A stretch of 64,000 nt of DNA. Source: Rebecca billardiae RCC1528. Its lineage: Eukaryota > Protista > Haptophyta. The DNA is taken from the NCBI GenBank assembly GCA_965240325.2, contig OZ251232.1:310001-374000 (forward strand), read 5' to 3'. The stretch's first letter is position 1, and the number at the start of each line of letters is the position of its first letter. The notes below the pieces were generated by a model that was not told where the DNA came from, searched no databases, and saw only the letters and a program-made list of their open reading frames with translations. This document shows, in pieces, positions 4,555 to 9,227 of this stretch. The translations under genes and the position numbers were made by a program.

Positions 4555-4631
4555 TGGGCGGTGACAGAGTTGGCGGGCGTCAATCTCGCCGACGCCTGTC
4601 TGAGCTGTGTGCGTCTGGCTGACTTATTCTT
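4555..4631. mobile_element. Degenerate solo TIR of MITE family A
   Basis: Matches 4339-4400 with several small insertions. Confidence 0.75.
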
Positions 4632-4818
4632 GTTTTTATTTTTAAAAAGTTTCTGTTTTATAATCCTTCATCGCACGCTCTCCGTACAGTTTTTTAAATG
4701 CTGCTTACCACTGCCAGTACCACGACAGACGAATCAGGAGACGAGCTGCGCCTGCCTCGTATCGTAGTAGTAGTCGCTGATGCTGATAGCCTGATGCACT
4801 CGTCTGAAGTCGTCGTAG

Positions 4819-7800
4819 TTATACAGTCGTAGTCGTCGTTTTCGTCGGCAAGCCAGCAGGTTCATCGGGGCGCGGCGACACGCGAACACTGCGCCGCGAC
4901 GGCTGCTCGTGCGGCGACGTCTCGGGCTCGGGGGCCGCGCACACGGTCTTCGCGAGGGGCAGCAGGTCTCGCACCACCTCGTTGTACCGCGAGACGGTCG
5001 CCAGCTCGACGGAGCGCAGCAGAGCCTCCTCGTGCGCCGCGTTGCTCGCGTGGCAGTTCATGATGTGGAAGGTGTCGATGGCGGCGAGCAGCGACTCGGC
5101 CTCGCTCGCCGTCTGCGCGACCGGCACGATCTCGATCGCCTCGCGCGCGCCAAGCATGGCCAGCCACGCGTACAGCTCGGCGGCGAACCACATGCGCGAG
5201 CAGAGGTTGGCGCCGAGCAAGACGACCAGCCGCTCAGCGCGGGCGAGGTGCGCCGGCATGTGCGCGAGCTGCTCGGCCGCGGTGAGCGACGGGTCGGCGC
5301 AGAGCGCGTCGATCCACACGCGCGGCGCGCGCCCGCCGTGCGCTGCGGCGAAGCGCGCGCTCCACTGCACGAGCGCCTCCTTCTTCGCGGTCGGGTTGTC
5401 GTGCCACGTGTGCACGATGTACGCGTCGAAGGTGAGCTGCGGGCGCTGGTGCGACAGCGCCGGCCTCGCCTCGCCCGCGGCCGCGCGCGGGATGAGCTCC
5501 ATCGCGCGCTCGACGTCGTCGCGGTCGTGGTACAGCGCCGCCGCGGCGTGCACGCGCGCGAGCGCGACGAGGCCGGCGCCGCGGTCGCTCCTGCGGTTGT
5601 CGCCGCCGCGCGTGGTGCTGCGGCTGCTGCGCGCCGCCCTGCCGCCCTCCGTGTCGACGCTGTCGACCGACTGGAACAGGCCGTTCTGCCGGCGGCCGCG
5701 GACCGGGCTGCGCATCGGGCTGCGGTGGTGCGAGCCCGAGTGCGCGGACCCGTCCTTGGACACCTGCCGGCCAAAGGTGGGGACGCCGGCGGGGATGCCG
5801 AGGCCGCGGTGCGAAGCGGCGCTGCAGCTGGCGGCGGAGCTGCCCGAGCAGTGCCGGGCCAGCGCCGGCTCGCGCTGACAGTCGCCCGGCCGGGGCGGGC
5901 CGGCGGCGCCAGCGTCCGTGCTCGCGGCGCTCAGCACGTGCAGAGGTGAGCACGGGTGCGCGCAGGGTGTGCCCTCGTCTGCCGGCGCGGGCGCGGTGCC
6001 CTGCTCGCCGCCCGCCGGCGCGGCGGGCACCACCTTCGCCTTGCGCGCCGCGCTGCTCAAGCCGCTCAAGCCGCGCCCCCGCGCGCCGGCCCTGGGCGGC
6101 AGCGCGCTGTCCGTGACGACAGACGAGCCGTCGGAGTCGCGGCGCGAGCGGCCCTCCCCGAGCTCGTCGTCGTCGTCGACAGAGTTGCCGCGCGCGGAGC
6201 GCTTGCCCGTGCGCGGCGTGCGGCGCGACCACGCGCCGAAGGCGACCTGCCGCGCCACGCTCACGTCGAGCGTGAAGCTGATCCTCGCGAGGATGTCGTC
6301 GCTCAGCTCGACCGGACGGCAGACGTCGCGCGCGTCGTGCACGGCTCGCTCCGTACTAAGCAGCAGGTCGCTGCCGAGGCCGATCAGCGGCGCGAGCCCC
6401 GCCCAGCGGCCCTGCGAGCACGCGGCCTTGGCCAGCAGGGACTGGCCGTACCGCCGCGAGAAGGGCATGATCAGGAACGAGCCGAGCGCCGCCGCGTTGA
6501 ACGCCACCAGCTGGTGCAGCAGCACCGCCACCGCCGGGATGTCGGCGTAGAAGCCGACCGCGTCGCACTGCAGGTTGCGCACGACGTAGTACAGCGCAGA
6601 CGCGACGGTGGCGATGCCGAGGCTGAGCCAGAGGGCGCGGAGGAGCGGCTTGGGCTGGCGCCACGCCGTGCACATGCGCCGCAGCAGCCACGCCGCGCAG
6701 AGCAGGTTGGCCACCACGTTCAGCCCGCTCATCCCCGCGACGGCGCGCACCCACGCGCTGCCGAGCAGTCGCGGGCTGCGCGCGAGGCACGTGCCCGGCG
6801 ACGCGCTGCCGCCGAGCAGCTGCAGCACGGTCGTGCCGTGGAAGAAGACGCTGTACAGCAGCATGAGCACGAAGATGACGCCGAACACGCGCACCGCGTG
6901 CAGGTGCGAGTGGATCGGGTGCAGCGCGAGCAGCACCACCGGGATCGCCAGCTGCGTCGCCAGGATGAACGCGGCCGTGAGCGCCGCCTCCGCGCCGTCC
7001 GCCAGCCCGAGTGTCGGGCTCAGCACCGCGCCCGCCGAGCCGAGGAGGAAGAGCGCGACCCCGCTCGAGCCCGCGATCTGCGTCACGCGCATCAGCGCGG
7101 CCTGCGCCTGCGCCACGGCGAAGTCGAGCACGTCGCGCGCGTCCGAGTCGCTCAGCACGCCGTCGTGCCGCCGCGCGTGCAGGAAGAGAGCACCGCTGCG
7201 CGCCGCGCTCGAGAGGCCGGGCTGCGCGTGCGAGGCGCGCGCGCCCGGCGTGTCGGCGGACGGCCGGTTCGAGGTGGCGGGGGAGACGGGCGACGCGTCG
7301 CCCCCGCTGTGCCGCATGCTGGGCGCGAACGCCGTCGACGAGAAGCGCTCCGCCAGCCGCTCGCGCCGCTTGGCGCCGCCGCGCCACGCCGCGGGCGTGC
7401 GCCGCCGCCGCGTCACCCTCTCGCGCCCCAGCCGCGCCTCGGCCGAGGCGGCGAGCACGCGGTGGTACGTGTCGCGCAGCAGCTTGAGCACGTGCCGGAT
7501 GTCCGGGGCCTCCTTCGCGCTGAGGAAGAGCATGTGCCCAACGCCGTTCACGACGTGCTCGGCCGCGGGCGCGAAGATGGCTCGCGTGAACGGCAGCACC
7601 GTCATCAGCGCGAGGACTGATGATGCCACGCACGCGCGCGGCGCGCGGGCGGGGCGGCGCGGCGTGAGAGCCGCGCGGCGCGCGGCGCGCGGCGCGGCGC
7701 GGCGCACGCACCGTCGTATGGCTTCACGTAGCCGTTCAGGTACTCCTTGATGTTCGCGCTCGCGTCGAGGCTGTCCAAGTGCTTCTTTGCAAACTGGGCC

Positions 7801-9227
7801 GCGTCCACGCCGCAGAAGGTGGCAAAGTACCACTGCTTGGTGCAGCGCGCGGGCAGCTTGCCCTCGCACAGCTTGCGCCACAGGCCCTCGAGGCCGAGGA
7901 ACTGCGCGTTGGCCAGGTAGCGCATCACGTCCGAGTCGGTGCGATCGGCGAACGACTTTGCCAGCTGCGAGGAAGCCGGCGTGCGGGCGCGGACGCGCAC
8001 ACGCGAGGGCGGCACGGGTCAGCGCGCGCGCAGGTGTGCGCGCCGCATCCGCATCCACTCCCACCGCTGGGTGGGCGAGCGTCGGGCGAGGCGGGCACGC
8101 GGCACGCGTGGCGCGACGCAGCGGCGGACCTGCATGGGCAGGAGCGGCACCGCGTCGCGACTCGTCACCGTCATCGGCACACCGCGCTCGAAGCAGAAGT
8201 CGTAGACGATGCGCGCGCCCTCGGGGTCGAACCCTGGGGATCGGTGGCGCGCGCGGGAGGCGGCGCGGCGGCGAGCGCGGCCAGTGAGCGACGCGCCCGC
8301 TGAGCGAGCGGTGCGCACTCGGAGCGACGACGGCGGCGCGCGCGCAGCGCGCAGCGCGCGGGCCGCACCGTTGTTCACGCTCGTGTCCGGCTTCCACCCG
8401 TGCGGCGCGCTCTCGTCCCCCTCGAGCCCGCCCTGCACCGCCACCTGTCGCACCTTGGCGCGCACGAGCTCGCCGTCCTCGACCATCGCGTCCGCGAGGT
8501 CGCGCAGGCTGCTGATGCACACGACGGTGAGCGAGTGCGGGCCCGCGGTGTTGAGCAGGCGGCGCACCAGCGCCGCGCCGTCCATCAGCCGCTCCTCGCC
8601 CACGCCCTCGAAGCCCGCCAGGTCGTACTCGTGCGGCTGCGCGGTGTAGGGCTTGCCCTGCGAGCCGATGCCCACCGGCACCTCGTCGTCCACGCCGAGC
8701 TGGTCGAGCAGGGCACGCGCGAGCCGGGCGCGCTTCTCGGGCTGGCCGCCCCCGTTGCACACGACGCCGCGCAGGAGCACCTCCTTGTGCACGTGCAGCA
8801 TCGCGAGCACGAGAATCGCCCTGCGCGCACGCGGGGGCGCAGGCCGACGGCGCGCCGTGAGGCGGACGAGTGCCGACTCGCAGCGCGCACGGCGCGCACG
8901 CGGATCTGCCGCGCAGGGATGGCGCGTCGTGTGGCGCTGCGCATCGCGCGCATGAGTGCGCGCACTTGACGTCATCTGGATCCGGGCCCTGTCGACCGGC
9001 AGGACGGCGCGCCCGGCAAAGGGGCGGCGGCGCCATCATCAGCCACGAGCGTGCAAGGAGCGCACCACGCGGCCACCGCGCCAGGCCAAAACGGCCAGGG
9101 CGCGCGCGCGTGCGCGCACCGGATCAGTGATGAGCAAGTACTCGGGCCGCCGCACCGATTTCAGCGCGAGCGGCCGCATGGGGGATGGCTTTACCGCGCC
9201 GGCGGCTTTTGGCTTACTGCCGGACAT
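4819..9227 (-). CDS. Fusion protein of inosine/uridine-preferring nucleoside hydrolase, ~6 TM helices and a C-terminal TIR-like domain (~1245 aa, 6 exons)
   Basis: Exons 9227-9120, 8988-8966, 8820-8369, 8233-8130, 7964-7712 and 7616-4819; all introns GT-AG; total 3738 nt, in frame. Spliced N-terminus LLITDPGPDPDDVKAILVL, then VQGG..NNGFDPEGA and PYDVLA (NH motifs). Hydrophobic block ~7080-6470. TIR-like FDAYIVHTWHD..VWIDALC..LVVLLG..SRMWFAAEL. Confidence 0.85.

Follow-up and report, generated by a model that had tools for sequence, protein, structure and literature searches.

A spliced gene of the haptophyte Rebecca billardiae predicted to join a XopQ/HopQ1-like hydrolase, a six-helix membrane block and a divergent TIR-like domain

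The stretch of DNA analyzed here comprises 64,000 nucleotides (nt) of Rebecca billardiae RCC1528 (GenBank assembly GCA_965240325.2, contig OZ251232.1, positions 310,001 to 374,000 of the forward strand); it is referred to below as the window, and all positions follow its numbering. On the minus strand, from 9227 to 4819, the listing of open reading frames (ORFs), the exon translations and the junction contexts revealed one gene of six exons and five introns. Judged from the sequence, this is a single spliced gene whose predicted product is a polytopic membrane protein of 1245 amino acids (aa) in four parts: an N-terminal hydrolase domain, a block of six transmembrane (TM) helices, a linker and a C-terminal TIR-like domain. 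This is also the order given by an earlier reading of the same DNA, made without database searches (hereafter the sequence-only reading).

Exon 1 (9227-9120) begins with the ATG at 9227-9225, has 36 codons and ends in ...LLITDP, thus bearing D35, the first Asp of a DxxxDxDD motif. Exon 2 (8988-8966) is only 23 nt long and encodes GPDPDDV together with two bases of a split Lys codon; its D39, D41 and D42 complete the calcium motif of the HopQ1/XopQ type. The core of the hydrolase fold is encoded by exon 3 (8820-8369), and exon 4 (8233-8130; (G)FDPEG...LLPMQ) makes the active-site NN-G-FD motif together with the end of exon 3. Exon 5 (7964-7712) corresponds to the hydrolase lid region, with L257, W274, F279 and the pair Y312-D313, and has PYD at its end. 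Exon 6 (7616-4819, with the stop codon at 4821-4819) is a single open frame of 932 codons plus stop, which contains the last ~55 residues of the hydrolase fold followed by the membrane block, the linker and the TIR-like domain. The exons total 3738 nt, i.e., 1245 codons and a stop. All five introns are of the GT..AG type, with lengths of 95-165 nt and a guanine-cytosine (GC) content of 77-87%.

When translated singly, the exons map colinearly and without overlap onto an unspliced homologue from Pavlovales sp. CCMP2436 (P0049, NCBI KAJ1636960.1): exon 1 onto its residues 2-23, exon 2 onto 24-30, exon 3 onto 32-180, exon 4 onto 182-215, exon 5 onto 216-299 and exon 6 onto 301-355. The one-residue gaps in this mapping coincide exactly with the split codons, and colinearity of this kind between predicted exons and a homologue is far beyond chance. 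The junctions, the total length and the mapping onto P0049 bear out the five GT-AG introns and the ~1245-aa product claimed by the sequence-only reading. Every motif that it quoted was found in the exon translations, namely ITDP|GPDPDD over intron 1, NN|GFDP over intron 3 and PYD closing exon 5, as well as FDAYIVHTWHD, VWIDALC and SRMWFAAEL, which are all encoded by exon 6. It had given the span of intron 5 as 7616-7712; the junction itself stands, with coordinates one base off at each end (7711-7617).

A key question is whether the hydrolase and the TM-TIR part could be two adjacent genes, or the whole a pseudogene. Prokaryote-style gene callers do split the homologous Diacronema locus (L001 4811-9315) in two, into a 226-aa hydrolase and a 1132-aa remainder. 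However, in R. billardiae, the first 55 residues of the 932-codon exon still belong to the hydrolase fold, no stop codon separates them from the membrane block, and every junction keeps the reading frame and the colinearity with homologues. The sequence over the intron 5 junction, KPYD-V-IALMSVLP, is uninterrupted DNA in the Diacronema lutheri-like homologue P0001. Full-length single ORFs of like architecture occur on transcript-like contigs (1283 aa on 4041 nt; 1097 aa on 3756 nt), and one homologue, P0013, is an MMETSP transcript. Since the hydrolase fold crosses intron 5 and ends within the long exon, two separate genes are excluded unless an internal promoter exists; the two-gene model was rejected on the grounds of this crossing, the in-frame junctions and the single-ORF homologues, and an artefact of annotation is extremely improbable. 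Thus, the two parts that the sequence-only reading had joined are most simply described as one gene.

Several other features of the locus can be mentioned here. GTGCG stands at the start of four of the five introns, the first ten bases are common to introns 1 and 2, and intron 5 is composed mostly of GCGCGG-type repeats; gene finding in this genome could make use of the shared intron starts as a splice-donor consensus. The GC content in the window is 56-78%. Numerous long overlapping ORFs are present on both strands at 4819-9039; examples are a plus-strand ORF of 554 aa (5956-7620) and, on the minus strand, a read-through frame of 1406 aa. These ORFs result from the very high GC content and are regarded as composition artefacts rather than genes. 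The sequence directly past the stop codon (4600-4830) includes a short patch that is AT-rich, in contrast to its GC-rich surroundings, and contains T runs, A runs and repeats of the GTAGTCGTC type; it may be the 3' untranslated region or a polyadenylation region. A tblastn search of this window found no second copy of the gene.

The N-terminal domain is, according to its motifs and profile matches, a HopQ1/XopQ-like, presumably calcium-dependent ribosyl hydrolase and not a generic or Urh1-type IU nucleoside hydrolase. Compared with PDB sequences, exon 3 alone matched XopQ best (7jlu_B, 4kl0 and 4p5f; E 2e-7), the best canonical enzyme being a uridine hydrolase at 0.05, and the full domain of P0049 aligned with XopQ over ~310 residues at E 3e-25 vs. 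2e-5 for a canonical nucleoside hydrolase. The NCBIfam XopQ model recognized exon 3 (E 8e-6) and exon 5 (E 2.4e-5), both in the right places. Exon 5 alone returned noise from the PDB, with XopQ at E 0.9; its assignment is based on the NCBIfam model and on transfer through P0049. The HopQ1-like clan is distinguished from true nucleoside hydrolases by DxxxDxDD in place of DxDxxxDD (PMC3608555; PMC11685791). In R. billardiae, the motif reads D-P-G-P-D-P-D-D across the junction of exons 1 and 2, and DxxxDxDD is present in 10 of the 13 full-length homologues that extend to the N-terminus.

Residue equivalences were transferred by alignment, from XopQ to P0049 and from P0049 to the exons, with XopQ numbering taken from bioRxiv 10.1101/2020.08.13.246413. 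Thus, D116, D120, D122 and D123 of XopQ, which form the calcium motif and of which D120 contacts ribose, correspond to D35, D39, D41 and D42; the adenine-recognizing lid residues L345, W361 and F366 correspond to L257, W274 and F279; and Y398, which contacts phosphate, and D399, which binds calcium by analogy with canonical hydrolases, correspond to Y312 and D313. Of the six ADP-ribose (ADPR) contacts (D120, Y311, L345, W361, F366 and Y398), five are kept according to this transfer, the exception being the phosphate-contacting Y311. XopQ has been reported to hydrolyze the ribose-ribose bond of the TIR product 2'cADPR to linear ADPR (bioRxiv 10.64898/2026.06.15.732069). ADPR also occupies the XopQ site in an earlier crystal structure.

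Could the protein instead be a housekeeping enzyme, i.e., a membrane-anchored salvage hydrolase for nucleosides or nicotinamide riboside whose C-terminal domain has no signalling role? The Pfam model IU_nuc_hydro (PF01156) does recognize exon 3 alone (E 1.9e-8), although barely at the gathering score (34.8 vs. 34.2 bits). The canonical DxDxxxDD hallmark is absent from this gene, where the first-Asp position is occupied by Ile (LLITDP) and the XopQ-type DxxxDxDD is found instead, and the canonical His before the calcium-binding Asp is likewise absent from PYD, where the acid position is Tyr, as in XopQ. With XopQ also closer in sequence, the canonical IU-hydrolase assignment was rejected. No hydrolysis of standard nucleosides was observed for XopQ and HopQ1 (PMC3608555; bioRxiv 10.64898/2026.06.15.732069), and the fusion of the hydrolase with the TIR-like domain is conserved across many paralogues. 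A salvage function is therefore very improbable. The IU-nucleoside-hydrolase fold proposed by the sequence-only reading survives at the level of the superfamily, with Pfam just at its threshold, and fails at the level of the class, given the DxxxDxDD motif and XopQ as the best solved relative. Urh1-type cleavage of nicotinamide riboside is not the chemistry to be expected of a domain placed in the XopQ-like clan by its motif and PDB matches, and with this assignment the suggested depletion of NAD precursors loses its support.

The plant-pathogen type III effectors XopQ, HopQ1 and RipB (4KL0, 4P5F, 7JLU chain B) thus share with this domain the clan, the motifs DxxxDxDD, NN..D and (L/P)YD and, as far as the alignment transfer shows, the Leu, Trp and Phe that contact adenine together with the pair Tyr-Asp. 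In contrast to these secreted bacterial effectors, the present gene is a eukaryotic, intron-bearing host gene without a type III secretion signal or a 14-3-3 site region, and its hydrolase is fused to a membrane block and a TIR-like domain. Piechocki et al. (2018; PMC6019455) described a clade of HopQ1-like proteins (HLPs) from haptophytes and heterokonts with a non-canonical calcium motif. The N-terminal domain described here fits that clade, although the HLP sequences were trimmed to the hydrolase domain and neither TM segments nor a TIR domain are mentioned there.

The C-terminal domain (4936..5451, minus strand; 172 aa) gave nothing above threshold when exon 6 was compared with Pfam and NCBIfam. 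According to its predicted structure, it is a divergent member of the TIR superfamily. The AlphaFold2 model, built from a 78-sequence alignment, had a pLDDT (per-residue confidence) of 96 and a pTM (whole-fold confidence) of 0.90, and the best 50 Foldseek matches in the PDB were all TIR domains, including those of RUN1, AbTir, SPARTA, MyD88, SARM1, RPP1 and Roq1. The VIA structural aligner placed the TIR domains of RPP1, RUN1, MyD88 and SARM1 at Z 10.6-9.0, with 113-139 residues aligned at 3.0-4.0 A; matches at Z 10.6 covered 131-139 residues. A profile search of PDB sequences aligned the family segment ...LLxLxGPxxxxRLWCxxEL... with the equivalent strand-helix of the SIGIRR and TLR15 TIR domains at a marginal E of 0.03-0.04, and TIR_2 reached E<0.01 in only 6 of 78 relatives. 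A two-sequence profile retrieved only noise from PDB sequences. The best viral matches were the TIR proteins of Tetraselmis virus 1 and Chrysochromulina ericina virus.

The sequence-only reading had called this domain TIR/HET-like. The TIR half of that description stands, since the modeled domain adopts a TIR fold in both structural comparisons. The HET half does not: membership in HET (PF06985) was rejected because Pfam gave no match here, a single one of the 78 relatives showed a weak match (E 0.0027) and only one block, VWIDALC, is alike. This block in VWIDALCAD resembles the W-I-D-x-L-C-I-[ND]-Q-like block of fungal HET, which is itself regarded as a TIR-related death domain of unknown mechanism (PMC10890737) and stands at the effector end of many sensor architectures. 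Nevertheless, the nearest solved structures of the domain described here are all TIR.

With the enzymatic TIR domains of plants (RUN1, RPP1, Roq1), animals (SARM1) and bacteria (AbTir, SPARTA, Thoeris ThsB), the domain shares the fold, a box-1-like D-A-[FY]-[IV]-x-H strand and a W-C-x-x-E-type motif with Glu at the catalytic position. According to the profile alignment, this Glu is E1127 (codon 5176-5178), within W-F-A-A-E as against the family consensus W-C-x-x-E; the retained Glu and the replacement of Cys by Phe had both been recognized correctly from the sequence. Among the family members with a residue at this position, 103 of 142 keep the Glu. The domain differs from the enzymatic TIRs in scoring below Pfam TIR and TIR_2, in its ~10-15% identity, in its extra C-terminal helices, in the Phe in place of Cys, in a Glu that varies among close relatives and in its six-helix membrane tether, which takes the place of the NB-ARC/LRR, SAM/ARM or Argonaute partners. 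The nearest clusters in the ESM Atlas were haptophyte and diatom proteins with the same TIR type following H-NOX (PF07700), DUF285 or TPR, with bona fide TIR families next. In marine protists, this divergent TIR type seems to serve commonly as the output domain of many different sensors.

Between the two soluble domains lies the membrane block (6415..7149, minus strand; exon-6 residues 156-400), which consists of a pre-membrane helix and six TM helices. Hydropathy shows six hydrophobic segments in exon-6 residues 180-383, and AlphaFold2 (54-sequence alignment; pLDDT 89, pTM 0.83) predicts the pre-membrane helix, six long helices and three short post-membrane helices, in agreement with the approximately six hydrophobic helices noted previously. 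Helices 4 and 6 are each followed by a loop with clustered basic residues, and exon 1 encodes no hydrophobic signal peptide at the N-terminus. The missing signal peptide, the six helices and the placement of the positively charged loops together suggest that both ends of the protein, and with them both soluble domains, face the cytosol; the cytosolic placement favored by the sequence-only reading is thus plausible.

The block is followed by a conserved post-membrane stretch (6235..6414) of GLAPLIGLG... and two helices, with the consensus LAPLxGxG in family alignments, which is among the best-conserved parts of the protein outside the TIR-like domain. Next comes the disordered, low-complexity linker (5455..6234; exon-6 residues 460-720), enriched in A, R, G, S and P and with 14% hydrophobic residues; it does not align between homologues and measures ~260 aa rather than the ~350 aa estimated earlier. 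Foldseek found no match for the membrane block in the PDB at E<=0.001, and a wide exhaustive VIA search returned only generic helical bundles (Z<=9.6, below the meaningful level for helical proteins). With no specific match from either program, we assign the block to no fold or channel family.

How widespread is this combination of domains? A word-based protein search with exon 6 returned a single homologue, P0001, and an exhaustive profile search was needed to reveal the family: the TIR-like domain was found in 1550 representatives at E<=1e-3 and in 746 at E<=1e-10. The counts for Glu given above and those for the hydrolase tail and the six-helix block cover the best 150 representatives. The hydrolase tail occurs on 42 of these, and 13 of 53 long members pass the Pfam IU_nuc_hydro model. 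An iterated search within the family placed the six-helix block in 85 of the 150; among the 78 with more than 300 residues ahead of the TIR-like domain, 70 have it. These block counts are approximate, as iterated searches on hydrophobic sequence can over-reach. In 45 of the 85 block-bearing members there is no hydrolase tail. One of them, P0154 of Cladocopium goreaui, is annotated, starts with Met and carries the six-helix block, the conserved post-membrane stretch and the TIR-like domain. The occurrence of the block and the TIR-like domain without a hydrolase indicates that this pair is the core module and that the XopQ-like domain is an addition to it.

P0154 and P0142, both from the dinoflagellate C. 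goreaui, and the protist proteins P0060 and P0109 all have the block, the post-membrane stretch and the TIR-like domain without the hydrolase, and their TIR-like domain has a near-textbook box 1 (DAF[IV]SHSWHDD) and RLWCxxE. Every named hydrolase-linked member belongs to Pavlovales, with three Diacronema lutheri paralogues and one protein of Pavlovales sp. CCMP2436, and the public names of family members recognize the hydrolase domain at most. The public model of one Diacronema lutheri protein (KAG8465511.1, P0151) seems to omit ~70 residues of the hydrolase core after ...GADAVP. Just upstream of this Diacronema locus, a MutS-family gene is present in both contigs, that of L001 and that of P0151.

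These data raise the question of what a protein of this kind could do. Where one membrane anchor presents both a TIR-type and a XopQ-type domain to the cytosol, the simplest reading is a signal maker accompanied by its own breaker. We assign a probability of roughly 45% to this reading, in which the protein is a self-limiting, membrane-bound module of nucleotide signalling or defence with maker and breaker both facing the cytosol; the chemistry of both domains is inferred from their motifs and relatives. The TIR domain, clustered or activated at the membrane, would cleave NAD+ to an ADPR-derived signal, e.g., a cyclic ADPR isomer, and the XopQ-like domain of the same chain would hydrolyze this product to linear ADPR. 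Formation of ADPR would either end and spatially confine the signal or convert it. The six-helix block would act as an anchor and possibly as a sensor or effector, as it travels with this TIR type even where no hydrolase is present. The sequence-only reading had already suggested that a signal might be made and then degraded; by analogy with the reported action of XopQ on 2'cADPR, the idea becomes more specific and better grounded. Conservation of the Glu is not strong in the closest relatives, which the sequence alone could not show.

A number of observations weigh against a signal maker paired with its own breaker. On the hydrolase side, the equivalent of XopQ Y311 is Pro, and identity to XopQ is ~25%, so that substrate specificity is not transferable with confidence; the 2'cADPR activity of XopQ comes from a preprint (bioRxiv 10.64898/2026.06.15.732069), and another activity, that of a phosphodiesterase of 2',3'-cyclic nucleoside monophosphates, is likewise ascribed to it (PMC11685791). 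On the TIR side, the gathering scores of Pfam TIR, TIR_2 and ThsB_TIR are not reached (13-17 bits vs. 28 for TIR_2), the motif Cys is replaced by Phe, and hydrolase-linked relatives retain the Glu in only 19 of 37 cases, compared with 84 of 105 members lacking the hydrolase tail, its position being occupied by Leu in the Diacronema lutheri homologue P0001. Conservation in the domain is highest not at the Glu but at two Asp of the first strand and loop, at the Trp after the Glu and at a later D-x-F and Asn. Finally, the topology is derived from hydropathy only.

Some of these points can be explained if the TIR-like domain is a non-enzymatic assembly or death-fold module, similar to the TIR domains of animal TLR and MyD88 or to fungal HET, and the XopQ-like domain binds or edits an ADPR-type ligand made elsewhere. 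The ligand would then control the oligomerization of the TIR-like domain and the action of the six helices, e.g., as a pore or a recruiter. In such a sensor or scaffold, it would be understandable that around half of the hydrolase-linked relatives have lost the Glu, among them P0001 and P0012, whose Asp motif is intact, that conservation is strongest at residues other than Glu and that Cys has changed to Phe in this copy. The same is true of the decayed Asp motifs in three full-length relatives (P0005, P0079 and P0101), which are expected if either domain acts without catalysis, and the weak match of one of the 78 members to HET, a TIR-related death domain, is in line with it. However, neither the Glu nor any part of the Asp motif is missing from this copy, the Glu is present in 80% of the wider family, and enzymatic TIRs (RUN1, RPP1, SARM1 and AbTir) are among the best matches in structure.

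Among the 14 full-length relatives, the Asp motif and the Glu are both intact in 9 of the 11 with an intact Asp motif, too few to judge whether the two active sites are coupled. The copy in R. billardiae looks competent in both domains, and the family seems, from its residues, to tolerate the loss of either active site; this tolerance keeps the non-catalytic sensor or scaffold a serious rival, which we consider possible and clearly less probable than the pairing of maker and breaker.

It is also conceivable that the two enzymes work in series to make a signal, with the XopQ-like domain turning the TIR product into a second molecule, e.g., ADPR, which acts on the membrane block or on another target. 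Such a converter shares its structural evidence with the pairing of maker and breaker, and both the known XopQ product, linear ADPR (bioRxiv 10.64898/2026.06.15.732069), and the constant company of the six-helix block and the conserved post-membrane stretch with this TIR type are in line with it. Nevertheless, the 45 of 85 block-bearing members without a hydrolase indicate that the hydrolase is not needed for the core function, and the membrane block has no channel-like fold match. We consider this serial arrangement unlikely.

Another important question is whether a protein of this composition has been described before. The literature contains the biochemistry of XopQ, the algal HLPs (PMC6019455), the TIR genes of haptophytes (PMC12489294) and the homology between HET and TIR (PMC10890737). 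Gephyrocapsa huxleyi has TIR-domain genes that are associated with virus resistance (PMC12489294). These resemble the present gene in having a haptophyte TIR fold with a conserved Glu and in encoding some membrane proteins, and an antiviral role has been proposed for them. They differ in that no additional enzymatic domains are reported for them and the term 'nucleoside hydrolase' is absent from that text; moreover, G. huxleyi is a coccolithophore, whereas the named members of the family described here are pavlovophytes. We found no published description of a hydrolase-membrane-TIR fusion in the literature covered, which includes few subscription journals, and the claim of an uncharacterized architecture made in the sequence-only reading agrees with this result. 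The domains are thus of known kinds; the architecture and the pairing that it implies are new.

The fusion of two domains in one gene is strong natural evidence that their activities share a pathway. To our knowledge, no substrate had been assigned to the enzyme XopQ for twenty years. The TIR product 2'cADPR was then linked to it in a 2026 preprint (bioRxiv 10.64898/2026.06.15.732069), and a eukaryotic fusion of XopQ-type and TIR-type domains in a family of paralogues supports the link between XopQ and TIR independently of that preprint. The fusion also points to NAD-derived signalling in marine haptophytes. The immune mechanisms of these algae are, as far as we know, almost unknown. In addition, Pfam fails to detect most instances of the divergent TIR type described here, even though marine protists have it very commonly. 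A maker, a breaker and a membrane part in one chain would provide a compact system for understanding how TIR signals are confined and ended.

In the boldest version of this idea, the protein would be a self-resetting second-messenger device in which a cyclic ADPR isomer is produced by the TIR domain at the membrane, the six-helix block responds to it as a pore or transducer and the XopQ-like domain switches the signal off. We regard this version as decidedly unlikely. If it were true, signalling of the 2'cADPR type would exist in haptophytes, and the effectors of the XopQ family would copy, or share their origin with, a eukaryotic signal-terminating enzyme rather than being a bacterial invention.

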